A stretch of 64,000 nucleotides of DNA, taken from sequence record ON529857.1; one strand, written 5' to 3'. Positions 398-53,738 of this stretch are shown here, in pieces. How positions within the stretch are numbered: the first letter of the stretch is position 1; every line of letters starts with the position of its first letter. Under the pieces are notes generated by a model that was not told where the DNA came from, made no database searches, and worked only from the letters and a program-made list of their open reading frames with translations. The position numbers and the translations under genes are program-made.

Positions 398-511
398 AGG
401 TCGGGTGGTCCTGTTTCGGGGGAGTTAGGCGGGGATGAAAAAGAGCGCAGGGGCACCCGCGCGAGCCCAAAACTTGTGACACGAATCGTCCTCGAAGTCA
501 AGATTTTCAAC

Positions 512-544: not shown

Positions 545-1144
545 AATCCACAGACGGGCTTATCTGTGGATAACTGACGATGTGTCGTTGACCCGTCACA
601 TCGACCCGGCTACACGTTCGTCATCGCTTCGGTAACGGAGCGGTCGGCGACCGGGCCTCGGCCCCTAGCCGGGGTTTCTCGACTTTCCTCAACCTTCGGG
701 AAGAGGACGGCGGGAAACTGGAGAACCAACCGGCGGGGTGACCCGCAGGACCTGGCCGTGGACACGAACCTTCAGACTGCCGCAGTCTTGAGTCGGTCCT
801 CAGGGATTGGACGGTGCCCAGCAAAGCGTCGTCACGATTTTCTCCGCGAGCCGTCCGCAGCAATGCGCCGGTTCGTCCAGAGACCTACATCGGTCGACTT
901 GCCTCCACGGGTTTTAGCCGGCCGATATGGTAGAGACGGAACACCGGGTCACACCGGACCGCTTACCGCCGGAACGGCTTCACCGTGGTGACACGGAATG
1001 CCCAACCGGACGACCCTTCCGGGAAACCGAGGAGGACCTCGTTCTCTCCCGGCCTAATCGTAAGAGATGGTCGGACAGTTAGGTCAGCCAGAACCAGATC
1101 GTCGGGGAAGCCCGCCTCAATCTTCGGATCGAGGCGGGCTTTTG
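545..1144 (+). ncRNA. Group I intron-like structured RNA (ORF-less, no host gene visible)
   Basis: P/Q/R/S-like elements in canonical order: GGCGGGAAAC 709-718, GUCCGCAGC 853-861, GUCCAGAGACCUA 875-887, UAAGAGAUGGUCGGAC 1061-1076. P5 = 719-725/840-846; P7 = GACC 882-885/GGUC 1069-1072. Several C(UUCG)G and GNRA-capped hairpins, all on the + strand. Confidence 0.7.
1107..1144 (+). terminator. Intrinsic terminator ending the plus-strand RNA (may also stop the converging minus-strand gene)
   Basis: AAGCCCGCCTC-AATC-TTCG-GATC-GAGGCGGGCTT followed by a T-run on the + strand. Confidence 0.7.
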
Positions 1145-2190: not shown

Positions 2191-2625
2191 TTAGGCCTTC
2201 GAGTTCGGAGCCGCGAACGCGTAGTACGAGACCGAAGCGCCCGAACCCAGTTCGGCGTAGATGCGGATGCCAGCGGCATCGTCATCAGCAGCCTTCAGGG
2301 TGGCCGGGTCGAACTTCAGCACGACCACGCTGCCGATCAGGGCAGCGGCGTCGATCGAACCGCCGGGGGCGTCGACCGGGTTGGCGCCGGCGGCGTCAAC
2401 GGTCTGAACCTTCAGGGCGGCGTCGCCGGTGGCAGCGTCGACGACGACGATGACGTCGAACGGCGTCTGGCCGTACATGTTCTTCAGATCGCCGCGACCG
2501 GCGGTCAGACGGTGCAGGTCAACGACCTGGCCGCCAGCAGCCGAAGCCGCCACAGCGGTGGCGCGATCCGAAAGGCTACGCAGCGCCAGGAGGGCGTCGT
2601 AACCGTGCTTGATCTTGGAGTTCAT
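2191..2625 (-). CDS. Minor capsid / head decoration protein
   Basis: 144 aa immediately after the MCP; N-terminus MNSKIKHGYDALLAL resembles the phiCbK-type minor capsid protein (from memory). Confidence 0.75.
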   Translation of the reverse strand: MNSKIKHGYDALLALRSLSDRATAVAASAAGGQVVDLHRLTAGRGDLKNMYGQTPFDVIVVVDAATGDAALKVQTVDAAGANPVDAPGGSIDAAALIGSVVVLKFDPATLKAADDDAAGIRIYAELGSGASVSYYAFAAPNSKA

Positions 2626-2700
2626 CTCAGAGATGTCCTTAGAAGGTGGTGGTGTTGTGGAAAGCCGGGGTGACCGAAGTCACCCCGTTGGGGTCACCGC

Positions 2701-3636
2701 TTACGCGGTCACCGCCGCCTTCTTGATGCCCCAGACGCGAGCGGCGGCGCGGCCCGACAGCACCGCGAGGCTGATCAGCCACTCGATGCGGGTGCGGTAA
2801 ACCGGCTTGTCGTTGACCTGACCCAGGTCGTCGACTTCCATCACGCCGTTTTGCAGGCCGATGACGCCCGAGTCGCCCACGTTCACGACGTAGATCGAGG
2901 TGCCAACGGGAGCGCCGCCACCGGGGCAGGCTTCGTTGAAGTCGATCACTTGCGTGTTCGTGTCGTCGTAGTCGGTGGTCAGGATCGGCAGGTCGTTATA
3001 GAACGCGACGCGCGTTCCATATTCGTCCTTGTCCCAGGTGATGAAGCCGGCGACCGAAGTCTGGCGCGAAGCGGCCGACAGCAGGTTGCGCATGCGCTTC
3101 GACATGATCAGGTGCGTGGCGCCGTCGACAGCGTCGATGGCTTCGTCCAGCACTTGCAGCGACAGAGCGTCACCGCCAGCGGTGGCGCCGGCCGGGATCA
3201 GCTGATCGCCGACGATGCGCTTGCGCAGGCCGTCGAATTCACGCGGATCGGCTTCCGAGTCGCCGTTGATGATCTTGCCGGCCAGGAAGAGCGACAGGGC
3301 CTTGACCTTCATCTTTTCCTGCATGGTGCGGATGTTCGCGCCATGAGTACGGATGAGGGCCTTATCGACGTCCAGGTCGCCGCCGACGATCTTCAGAACT
3401 TCGACTTGCGAGTTGATGACGCCGACGCCGTTCCCGTACGCTTCGTTGAAGCCACGGAAAGCCACGCCAGGCAGCTGACCTTCTTGGGTGTAGGTGTACG
3501 AACCACCCGGCACGTCCATGAAGGGGAGGACCTTCAGGAGGTCCGGATAAGCGAACAGCTCGATGATCGCCGAGCGCTTCACTTCGTCGTTGCCCATAGC
3601 CAGGTCAGAGGCTTCGAGCAGGGTCAAGGCAGCCAT
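2701..3636 (-). CDS. Major capsid protein (HK97 fold, phiCbK type)
   Basis: 311 aa; motifs LPFMDVPGGSYTYTQEGQLPGVAFRGFNE, GGDLDVDKAL, INGDSEADPREFDGLRKR, RTRIEW; lies after the scaffold gene. Confidence 0.93.
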   Translation of the reverse strand: MAALTLLEASDLAMGNDEVKRSAIIELFAYPDLLKVLPFMDVPGGSYTYTQEGQLPGVAFRGFNEAYGNGVGVINSQVEVLKIVGGDLDVDKALIRTHGANIRTMQEKMKVKALSLFLAGKIINGDSEADPREFDGLRKRIVGDQLIPAGATAGGDALSLQVLDEAIDAVDGATHLIMSKRMRNLLSAASRQTSVAGFITWDKDEYGTRVAFYNDLPILTTDYDDTNTQVIDFNEACPGGGAPVGTSIYVVNVGDSGVIGLQNGVMEVDDLGQVNDKPVYRTRIEWLISLAVLSGRAAARVWGIKKAAVTA

Positions 3637-28991: not shown

Positions 28992-29141
28992 CGGGTGTCT
29001 CCGTTGTCGGTCCCTCCCTTCTAGCGGGGCGGGCGGAGGTGTCAACCTCTTTTTCTCACTTAATCTAGCGTTAAGGTTAATGCGAGCGGGCCGCAAAAAG
29101 GGGCGTCGCCAGTCCGGCGCCGCCCAGTCTTGCACCTTGTG

Positions 29142-46612: not shown

Positions 46613-46987
46613 TCAAGCGGGCGGCCCCATCCGGCTGTCGACCCATTCCGGCCCCCAAGTGAGGATGCGCAGGCGATCCGCCATCGACTGAACCGCCAGG
46701 GCGCGGGCGGCGCGCACGTCGCCCTTCAGGGCGCGCGACGCCAGTTGCAGACAGAGATAGTTGTCGTCGATGAAACGATCCATCTCGTCCAGCTTCTCGA
46801 TGCCGACGCTGAGCGCGGTCTGCGCCGTCAGTTCGGCGCCGCCGATGTTGAACACCGCCCAGCCTTCCGTGAGGTTGGTCTCGTTGTCCTTCTCGATGAT
46901 AGCGGCGTATTCCTTCAGCATCCCCAGCAGGGCGTTGATGAGGACCACCTTGGGCATGTCGTCGATCTTCTTCATCTCAGTCCTCAT
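46613..46987 (-). CDS. Hypothetical protein
   Basis: Coupled gene. Confidence 0.6.
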   Translation of the reverse strand: MRTEMKKIDDMPKVVLINALLGMLKEYAAIIEKDNETNLTEGWAVFNIGGAELTAQTALSVGIEKLDEMDRFIDDNYLCLQLASRALKGDVRAARALAVQSMADRLRILTWGPEWVDSRMGPPA

Positions 46988-47733: not shown

Positions 47734-47775
47734 GGGGTGTCTCCCGTTGTTTGATGGCTCAGGTGTAGCCCGGCG

Positions 47776-48114
47776 TCAGGCCGGTGTCAACTCCTCTTTT
47801 ATACTATTTTTCGCCGCCTCGGCCAGGGCGGTGAAGCCCGCCTCCTTCAACGTCGCATAGAGGTGTCCGTGCAGATAGCGCAGGGTCGAGCGGCCGCGCA
47901 TGATCGTGCGCACCACGCCCAGGGGTTCGCCCTTGCGGTTGCGGACGGTGATGATGATGGTGGTCTTTTCCGACCCATAGGGCGACGGCAGTTCAGGGCC
48001 TTCCACCTGATACAGCACCTCGGCGCTCTGGCGCGGGGTCGTCAGGGTCAGGGTCTGGATGGCGCCCTTGATCAGGGTGTCGCCGTAAAGAAAGGTCATG
48101 CGGGCGCGAGCCAT
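47776..48114 (-). CDS. Cassette hypothetical protein
   Basis: Consensus promoter and RBS. Confidence 0.7.
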   Translation of the reverse strand: MARARMTFLYGDTLIKGAIQTLTLTTPRQSAEVLYQVEGPELPSPYGSEKTTIIITVRNRKGEPLGVVRTIMRGRSTLRYLHGHLYATLKEAGFTALAEAAKNSIKEELTPA

Positions 48115-49010: not shown

Positions 49011-49169
49011 GTCGGGTGTCTCCGTTGTTCTGTCTCCCTTCTAGCCGGGGCGATTTCAAGTGTCAACCGCTTTTGTGTAGATAATGCCGGAGAGACGTTA
49101 ACCTTAACACCGCATTAAGGTTAATGCGAACGGGGCGCAGAAAGGCGGTCCGTCAGGACCGCCCTCGCG

Positions 49170-51542: not shown

Positions 51543-51705
51543 GGGGTGTCTCCTCCCTTGATCTGTCCCAGGGTATAGCCGGGGCGGTTCTAGGTGTCAA
51601 CCGCTTTTTCATAGAAAATGCCGGGGATGCGTTAAGGTTAACGCGAACCGCTCGCGAAAAATGCGCCCGGCCGGGGGAGACAAGCCCGGCCGGGCGCGGT
51701 TTGGT

Positions 51706-52332: not shown

Positions 52333-52499
52333 GGCGGGTGTCTCCGTTGTTCTGCTTCCCTTCTAGCCGGGGCGGTCTCAGGTGTCAACCACTTTTTCAC
52401 AGAAAATAGCAGGGCGGCGGCCATTAACCTTAATGGGGTGTTAAGGTTAATGCGAGCGGGTCGCAGAACGCCCCGGCTTCGGCCGGGGCGCATCGCGGG

Positions 52500-53030: not shown

Positions 53031-53191
53031 GTCGGTGTGTCTCCGTTGTTGGTGACACCCTTTTAGCCGGAGCGATTCAGGGTGTCAACACATCTTTTTC
53101 AGAAAATACAGAAGGAGGTGTTAACCTTAATACGGCGTTAAGGTTAACGCGAACGGATCGCAGAACGCCCCGGCGTCGTCCGGGGCGAGGA

Positions 53192-53665: not shown

Positions 53666-53738
53666 GGGGCGTCTCCGTTGTTGGTGACACCCTTCTAGCC
53701 GGACGCCAGAAGGGTGTCAACCTCTTTTTATCAGAAAA

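Follow-up and report, generated by a model that had tools for sequence, protein, structure and literature searches.

The 64,000-nucleotide (nt) stretch of DNA analysed here, referred to as the window, is the 3' part of the genome of Brevundimonas phage vB_BpoS-Kikimora (ON529857.1, 312.6 kb), a member of the Dolichocephalovirinae; by blastn, position 400 of the window corresponds to position 249015 of that record. Comparative analysis establishes positions about 623-1144 of the plus strand as an independent gene in the head module of the Kikimora-like and Domovoi-like jumbo phages, predicted to specify a noncoding RNA (ncRNA) of about 520 nt. The predicted fold is conserved and comprises a 5' hairpin capped by a GNRA loop, a 5' block that is nearly invariant, two junction domains (LR1 and LR2), long hairpins and probably a helix that joins the two ends. 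As a whole, the data are best explained by an autonomous gene for a folded ncRNA of a new family, which would be expressed early, be accessory to the phage and act in trans, and which would not be a group I ribozyme; we hold this explanation to be likely, if well short of certain. An earlier reading of the letters alone (the sequence-only reading) had taken the interval for a free-standing group I ribozyme; its observations were valuable and hold up for the most part, but the group I label does not.

The homologs compared are 17 distinct sequences of about nine lineages, all located at the same genomic site. The secondary structure was derived from an alignment of the Domovoi and Marchewka sequences with RNAalifold, and two covariance models were built from three nearly identical Domovoi-group sequences only: R1, which covers hairpin H3 and the LR1 domain, and R2, which covers hairpins Hx and H8 and the LR2 domain (Table 1). 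In the 64-kb window, R1 gives a full-length match at 672-848 (28.8 bits, E 5e-5) and R2 a full-length match at 846-1053 (22.5 bits, E 3e-5); the two are collinear, models built from Domovoi alone recovering the Kikimora RNA one part after the other. R2 also has a weak further match with large deletions at 46669-46770 of the window (plus strand, 15 bits, E about 0.006-0.01), which probably reflects G+C-rich hairpins.

When the seven isolates are aligned, 93.6% of the cells in the R1 region are paired and 19 of its 56 pairs are changed on both sides (0/500 shuffles; slid controls 30-48%), while the R2 region has 93.4% of cells paired and 19 of 61 pairs changed on both sides (3/500 shuffles; slid controls 31-42%). 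The larger sets give 93.7% and 24 of 56 pairs for R1 (11 distinct sequences, 0/500 shuffles, slid controls 28-47%) and 92.1% and 42 of 61 pairs for R2 (14 distinct sequences, slid controls 33-41%). None of 500 shuffles reaches the covariation score or the percentage of paired cells in any of these four alignments, and in the 14-row R2 alignment none reaches any measure. A plain MAFFT alignment of Kikimora with contig L042 (88% identity), which is independent of the models, holds compensatory changes in H3 (three), Hx (three), H6, H8 and H10. The predicted secondary structure is kept by compensatory change, as in conserved structured ncRNAs generally. Covariation among homologs, by which the sequence-only reading had proposed to judge its ribozyme, is indeed strong, but it belongs to nested helices and not to group I pairings.

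The block at about 624-673 is the most conserved part of the RNA. In hairpin H1 the loop reads GUAA, GAAA or GUGA according to lineage and six to seven of seven pairs persist in every lineage; the C(UUCG)G loop that had been placed at about 627 dissolves on inspection, its letters being part of the stem of this GNRA hairpin. Hairpin H2b is nearly invariant and covariation therefore says little about it. The 7-bp helix LR0, joining the 5' and 3' ends, probably forms: all 16 sequences tabulated have 7/7 pairs, with one compensatory G-C/A-U change and two one-sided ones, and the helix appears in the minimum free energy (MFE) fold, the centroid fold and the RNAalifold consensus, whereas a rival local stem, 644-648/668-672 (5 bp), carries an uncompensated C.A in L058 and L059. 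A 5'-leader/3'-tail helix suggested by RNAalifold for Domovoi and Marchewka was rejected, as it would fall inside the -10 box or ahead of it and Kikimora lacks it. A long-range helix 605-612/666-673, also proposed earlier, fares no better: positions 605-612 are the -10 region of the promoter, probably upstream of the transcript, and the pairing has uncompensated mismatches in several phages.

Further downstream, much of what the sequence-only reading had drawn proves real and conserved. The C(UUCG)G loop at about 695 caps H3, whose outer helix has five of eight pairs changed on both sides, and the long-range helix 719-725/840-846 is LR1, with three of seven pairs changed on both sides and compensatory changes in every hairpin that it encloses. 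Hx has five of nine pairs changed on both sides and a loop that reads GCAA, GCGA, GUAA or GAAA by lineage. In the LR2 domain, helices 6-10 of R2 have 3-12 pairs changed on both sides, and the GNRA loops noticed at about 988 and 1023 cap H10 and H12; the closing LR2 helix itself is almost invariant, with one C-G variant. Of the helix 933-941/1041-1048, the GAGA/UCUC core stands as a conserved element, while the helix 914-920/1049-1057 is limited to the Kikimora clade and clashes with two covariation-supported helices. H13 has the weakest positional homology between clades, its inner stem showing two compensatory changes between Domovoi and Marchewka. The single strand CCAGAACCAGA that precedes the 3' strand of LR0 is nearly invariant, with the variants CAGAACAAGA and CAGAUUCAGA, and the conserved-helix scan found no pairing partner for it.

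The loops of H1, H5 (GUGA, GCGA or GUAA by lineage), Hx, H10 and H12 are GNRA in nearly every lineage despite changes of letters, the exceptions being Hx and H12 of L064. A GNRA loop kept while its letters vary is a signature of tertiary docking, which may well be its role here. Candidate docking sites were rejected: the base of H8 in Kikimora (CCUACA/UAUGG), read by eye, resembles what we take to be the 11-nt tetraloop receptor but is not conserved in other lineages, and neither kissing of the H9 and H10 loops nor a GUCA/UGAC pairing between the flank of H7 and the loop of H5 is conserved across lineages by eye.

The strand of the RNA is well defined. Against dinucleotide shuffles the 522-nt plus strand folds with a z of -4.9 and the minus strand with a z of -2.7; the model structure has 65 G.U cells versus 12 A.C cells, and the conserved tetraloops read GNRA or UUCG solely on the plus strand, so that fold, G.U excess and tetraloop reading all point to a plus-strand transcript. 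The Caulobacter sigma-73 consensus, which Malakooti and Ely are said to have reported in 1995, is TTGACGS-N10-14-GCTANAWC. The predicted promoter of Kikimora (TTGACCC-N14-GCTACACG) is of this type; its homologs in Domovoi (TTGACGG-N14-GCTACATC) and Marchewka (TTGACGG-N14-GCTAAATC) match the consensus perfectly, and a promoter of the same type is kept in the metagenomic homologs. A looser motif, TTGACNN-N12-16-GCTANA, occurs eight times in the window against 0.19 expected, a number reached by 0/100 shuffles. Six of the seven other occurrences were compared with the annotation and all six are intergenic, upstream of small hypothetical minus-strand genes. The set looks like a phage early-promoter family of which the RNA promoter would be a member; since motifs ahead of small genes resemble an early-gene array, we infer early transcription by the host polymerase. 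At the other end, the plus-oriented terminator that the sequence-only reading had recognised is confirmed (-30.1 kcal/mol, z -5.7), and the Domovoi group has a further terminator, on the minus strand, placed back to back with this one. With its own predicted promoter and terminator and its orientation antisense to the head genes, the element fits the earlier proposal that it stands free of any host gene and yields the RNA as its product.

An inverted repeat with a perfect DnaA-box 9-mer that is present as a single copy in the window precedes the predicted start by about 50-75 bp. The repeat is found in all homologs whose upstream sequence was read, often with a third copy, which in the Domovoi-like phages is a direct one. 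The RNA promoter may be controlled through this repeat by a phage factor or by the DnaA of the host; that the repeat serves as an origin is less likely. Another 10-nt inverted repeat (CGATGTGTCG / CGTCACATCG, 578-603) flanks the -35 hexamer, and other lineages have differing palindromes at or adjoining the -35 or within the spacer; these palindromes may be an operator.

The interval at 399-1147 (about 750 nt) separates two minus-strand genes, KIKIMORA_04060 (phrog_10854, of unknown function; start codon at 398) and KIKIMORA_04070 (311 aa, without family match). It belongs to the head module because capsid, scaffold and head genes surround it: nearby genes on the same strand as these two encode a phrog_427 protein, the major capsid protein (MCP), a scaffolding protein and a head protein. 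That this gap between virion-module genes is free of credible open reading frames (ORFs), as had been noticed, is upheld by stop counts and by the lack of three-periodicity: positions 588-1145 have at least three stops in each of the six frames in Kikimora, Gurke, Marchewka and Bambus, and Domovoi and Marchewka differ by 96 substitutions, which the three codon positions share as 38/27/31. The same counts decide against a protein-coding gene, for which we see next to no chance. Two records do carry a 214-aa hypothetical protein on the plus strand here (DOMOVOI_05190 and KABACHOK_04620), and three Domovoi-group phages, and only these, have a plus frame open for 182 codons across the region. However, that frame is interrupted by five stops in Marchewka and Bambus and by three in Kikimora and Gurke, and most of the indels that separate the lineages are not multiples of three. 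Stops, indels and codon-position counts taken from the alignments already refute the coding interpretation, and the two annotated coding sequences (CDSs) are almost certainly spurious. In published genomes, the RNA gene is either unannotated or misannotated as a hypothetical protein.

A blastn search of 50,697 phage records finds the element in the seven Brevundimonas pondensis phages of at least 300 kb only, at the identical site each time; these phages are described in PMC10070969, where the RNA element is not mentioned. Further homologs were obtained by searching a flanking protein in a collection of 5.8 billion proteins and fetching the contigs that encode its relatives. Contigs from Logan, ENA and JGI carry the RNA at the site known from the isolates: L042-L049, with 88% identity to Kikimora, and L056-L064 and L067, with nhmmer scores from 442 down to 98 bits. 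Exact-pattern scans of IMG/VR (three patterns), JGI metagenomes (one) and GTDB genomes (two) returned nothing or only matches by chance within coding DNA; no homolog was present at the IMG/VR loci whose MCP is related, the two closest contigs stopping short of the site. The interval is absent from the Caulobacter phages phiCbK, CcrRogue, CcrColossus, CcrPW and C2 and from Brevundimonas phage Bajun, and nothing is detectable at the site in L052 and L054. In L055, the flank protein is 80% identical to that of Marchewka, yet the site is a 250-nt gap without the RNA. As the RNA is present on many contigs yet missing from close relatives, the element is widespread but dispensable, in the manner of a moron.

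The comparison with phage morons can be taken further. The RNA cassette has a predicted host-type promoter and an intrinsic terminator, is oriented opposite to the surrounding late operon, is inserted between conserved genes and is variably present among close relatives, attributes that together describe a moron-type unit; in CcrColossus, CcrPW, L051 and L068 its site is filled by different cargo, namely reverse-strand ORFs. The stretch that separates the head-decoration genes from the homolog of 04060 thus acts like a hot spot at which antisense cargo is inserted. Unlike that of phage morons, the cargo here is a large structured RNA and no protein. Just upstream of the RNA and on the same strand, some lineages have an ORF of 56-64 aa with promoter-like and RBS-like signals and without any Pfam or PHROG match, which could be a partner of the RNA or a separate cargo.

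Searches of Rfam 15 at the gathering score, at E<=10 on 871 nt and, for eight homologous loci, at E<=5-10 assign the RNA to no family, the chance matches (CRISPR-DR28, rnk_pseudo, Guanidine-II) lying far below threshold. There is no Rfam match to GOLLD, ROOL, OLE, HEARO or raiA even at E<=10, nor to RNase P RNA, tmRNA, group II introns or small self-cleaving ribozymes; ARAGORN finds neither tRNA nor tmRNA in the window, and a full-text search of the literature found no description of this RNA. Judged by these searches, the RNA is a new family without a detectable relative in Rfam 15, and it joins the few large ornate RNAs, known from phages and bacteria, whose roles have yet to be worked out. 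With the ornate RNAs (GOLLD, of the RF01998 type, ROOL, OLE, raiA and HEARO) it shares a length of hundreds of nucleotides, many covariation-supported helices, multi-helix junctions, abundant tetraloops and an independent transcript (here predicted) with no obvious coding or cis-regulatory role, and like GOLLD and ROOL it is encoded by phages or prophages. It differs from them in its alphaproteobacterial hosts and jumbo siphophage genomes, in the lack of the adjacent tRNA genes seen at many GOLLD/ROOL loci and in its fixed place in the head module. In comparison, the packaging RNA (pRNA) of phi29 is likewise a phage-encoded structured RNA, and a link to head morphogenesis is suggested here by position alone; pRNA, however, is about 120-174 nt long, is confined to phi29-like podophages and is encoded at the genome end and not in the head module, there is no similarity of sequence or model, and the promoter class here suggests early rather than late expression.

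In bacteria and phages, strongly covarying structured RNAs longer than 400 nt are rare, and the few that are known (RNase P, group I and II introns, OLE, GOLLD, ROOL, HEARO) have proved to be ribozymes, cores of ribonucleoproteins (RNPs) or RNA-only assemblies. In the mechanism proposed here, the host RNA polymerase with sigma-73 would transcribe the RNA from a promoter class shared with the phage's small, presumably early gene clusters, and the upstream DnaA-box repeat may modulate this promoter. The transcript would stop at its own terminator and accumulate as a compactly folded particle, presumably stable because both of its ends are locked in helices. The folded RNA would then act in trans; most probably it would scaffold a partner protein, lure one away as a decoy or form an RNA-only assembly, and it would serve host takeover or counter-defence in an accessory, moron-like fashion instead of splicing. 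It is the combination of orientation, promoter class and patchy presence that points to such a role, away from a core step of head assembly. The mechanistic part of this proposal (early, stable, compact, trans-acting) is put forward with modest confidence. Several points weigh against it. The scaffold or decoy role is a guess, no result indicating a partner, a target or an activity, and the start site, the abundance and transcription itself are all deduced from sequence. The position in the head module could mean a role in head assembly or packaging, and the DnaA boxes and promoter could instead signal a replication or cis-regulatory function. As the covariation alignments were fitted to the structure of the model and their rows are related (about nine lineages), the counts are of cells and overstate independent events; in addition, a single compensatory event supports LR0, which has the local stem as a competitor.

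A free-standing group I ribozyme of the IC1/IE type, lacking host exons and processing itself or acting in trans through a guanosine-binding P7, was the alternative proposed earlier for this RNA, and we regard it as very improbable. The resemblance is not imaginary: the RNA has a size comparable to that of group I introns (RF00028; IA2 in phages, IC1 in Tetrahymena) and is rich in GNRA loops, GACC 882-885 can pair with GGUC 1069-1072, and in Kikimora and Gurke strings like P, Q, R and S, as measured against what we take to be the group I consensus, follow one another in canonical order (706-717, 857-864, 876-889 and 1061-1076). So much of the claim of four core elements stands, but the strings are confined to the Kikimora clade. 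The P-like string lies within H3 and the Q-like string within Hx, and changes are compensated there with no P4 preserved; in L042 the P-like string has gone from GCGGGAAA to GCGUGGAG, compensated within H3 rather than in a P4. Hairpin H8, itself supported by covariation, takes up the R/P3' segment as its 5' strand, and the S-like string sits in the apical part of H13; the 14/16 match of this string to what the sequence-only reading presumed to be the Tetrahymena core does not, even if exact, survive the comparison of homologs. The proposed P7 (882-885/1069-1072), said to combine the G-binding pair with a compensatory change, has 4/4 pairs in Kikimora and Gurke only, falling without compensation to 1/4 in the Domovoi group and to 3/4 in Marchewka and in L042, where the pair C885-G1069 is lost. 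A conserved-helix scan of the seven isolate sequences found no covarying helix that crosses others as in a pseudoknot, the two junction domains are nested, and the spacing between Hx and H8 is only about 9 nt, too few for P7 5' plus P3 3' and thus leaving no room for a P3/P7 pseudoknot. Exons and a splice-site context are lacking, no plus-strand gene stands on either side, and the unit has its own predicted promoter and terminator. The covariance-model check with RF00028 matched neither the window at the gathering score nor positions 380-1250 (871 nt) at E<=10; neither Intron_gpI nor GIR1 matched at E<=10 in this region or at E<=5-10 in eight homologous loci (L003 and seven others). This negative is weak by itself, given the low sensitivity of the model: in a T4 control (L066, 137955-145112), RF00028 gave the td intron 40.3 bits (E 1e-7), short of the 50 bits that are its gathering score, and did not list the nrdB intron even at E<=1, a warning against using it as the lone ground for excluding group I introns. 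The comparative data on the proposed pairings contradict the IC1/IE-like identity by themselves, and on their evidence the RNA is neither a group I intron nor a derivative of one; consensus-like strings in a single sequence can mislead when homologs are not compared.

Catalysis or self-assembly of another kind is doubtful, though less easily set aside: the fold could catalyse a reaction as a ribozyme of a new class or build a homo-oligomeric cage like GOLLD and ROOL. A length of about 520 nt, two junction domains and five nearly always GNRA loops suggest tertiary docking, junction and single-stranded segments are invariant, and RNA-only complexes are formed by large ornate phage-associated RNAs (PMC12286853). 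Against this stand the lack of similarity to any Rfam ribozyme or ornate RNA, the failure to see a self-complementary loop common to all lineages, as oligomerisation would suggest, and the missing tRNA genes. Likewise unlikely is the proposition of a new class of catalytic or self-assembling phage RNA that host sigma-73 and DnaA would bring to early expression and whose action would be on a process of the host; if true, its target could be replication control, RNA repair or defence, and the outcome would be new ribozyme chemistry or an RNA-only particle akin to GOLLD and ROOL. Replication origins can depend on a transcript, as in ColE1 RNA II and the R-loop origins of T4. The element could, then, act mainly in cis, either as an origin or primer transcript or as a convergent unit that insulates or processes the minus-strand head operon, which seems to us quite improbable. 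The conserved DnaA-box repeat lies immediately upstream, the unit converges on the minus-strand genes upstream of it and diverges from those downstream, and the Domovoi group has its back-to-back terminators. But an R-loop primer or insulator needs neither about 120 compensated base pairs nor GNRA loops kept GNRA, the transcript stops at a strong terminator and does not run into a DNA-unwinding element, close relatives manage without the element, and the cumulative GC skew has no turning point at the locus. Returning to the autonomous, trans-acting RNA, its function is directly testable, since a cultivable pair (Kikimora and its relatives with Brevundimonas pondensis LVF1), clear transcription signals and patchy presence come together.

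Table 1. Features of the RNA gene and its surroundings. Coordinates are window positions unless a numbered locus or contig (L) is given.
Feature	Coordinates	Strand	Description
Inverted repeat with DnaA-box 9-mer	546..573	.	ATCCACAGA / TCTGTGGAT (546-571); perfect box TTATCCACA at 565-573, minus strand
Predicted promoter	588..616	+	-35 TTGACCC 588-594, 14-nt spacer, -10 GCTACACG 609-616
Predicted transcript (structured ncRNA)	623..1144	+	About 520 nt; 5' end from promoter, 3' end at terminator U-tract
H1 hairpin	624..643	+	8 bp; GNRA loop GUAA 632-635
LR0, 5' strand	644..650	+	UCGGCGA; candidate end-closing helix with 1099-1105
H2b hairpin	653..664	+	GGGC-CUCG-GCCC; nearly invariant, inside the block ~624-673
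H3 long hairpin	674..718	+	Outer stem 674-681/711-718; apical C(UUCG)G 693-700; holds P-like string
LR1 domain	719..846	+	Helix 719-725/840-846 closes four-way junction of H4/5, H6 and H7
H4/5	730-749		GNRA loop 738-741
H6	751-804		Loop CCG 780-782
H7	810-833		
Hx hairpin	847..875	+	GNRA loop GCAA 860-863; holds Q-like string
H8 long hairpin	883..931	+	889-896/919-926, base 883-885/929-931; holds R/P3' string; covariation-supported
LR2 domain	933..1048	+	GAGA 933-936 / UCUC 1045-1048 closes junction of H9, H10 and H11/12
H9	937-961		Loop GUCACA
H10	969-1009		GNRA loop GUGA 988-991
H11/12	1010-1042		Loop GAAA 1023-1026
H13 hairpin	1051..1085	+	1051-1057/1079-1085; apical GNRA-like GUAA; holds S-like string
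Conserved single strand	1088..1098	+	CCAGAACCAGA; two CAGA repeats, directly before LR0 3' strand
LR0, 3' strand	1099..1105	+	UCGUCGG; partner of 644-650
Intrinsic terminator	1106..1144	+	G+C-rich hairpin, UUCG loop, then UUUU; upper stem covaries among lineages
Seven other promoter-like motifs	29020-29045, 47764-47790, 49040-49066, 51574-51600, 52362-52388, 53062-53088, 53694-53720	-	TTGACACC...CCCCGGCTA(G/T/A/C)A
DOMOVOI_05190	L002 2458-3102		Annotated CDS coinciding with RNA gene; almost certainly spurious
KABACHOK_04620	L005 2405-3043		Annotated CDS coinciding with RNA gene; almost certainly spurious
Site without RNA	L055 1587-1837		Empty
Site without RNA	L051 2924-3816		Reverse-strand ORFs
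Site without RNA	L068 1813-2805		Reverse-strand ORFs
Site without RNA	L013/L014, about 2384-2815		
Upstream ORF, 56-64 aa	L002 2316-2486	+	Also in L004 and L005
Upstream ORF, 56-64 aa	L064 2228-2398		
Upstream ORF, 56-64 aa	L056 2605-2799		
BjrC68-like match	L003 3662-3746	-	Intergenic
BjrC68-like match	L056 1105-1189	+	Intergenic
BjrC68-like match	L058 1242-1313	+	Within called ORF

Around the RNA gene, Pfam and PHROGs are uninformative on the neighbouring small ORFs. The leader that separates the divergent region from the start codon of KIKIMORA_04060 contains a terminator-like hairpin followed by a T-run (443-462, minus strand), which could be an attenuator or the end of an upstream minus-strand operon. 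Downstream of the decoration-protein gene there are sub-threshold Rfam matches to the alphaproteobacterial sRNA BjrC68 (30 bits versus a gathering score of 39), which may point to a small RNA conserved in these phages or to one of their terminator elements.

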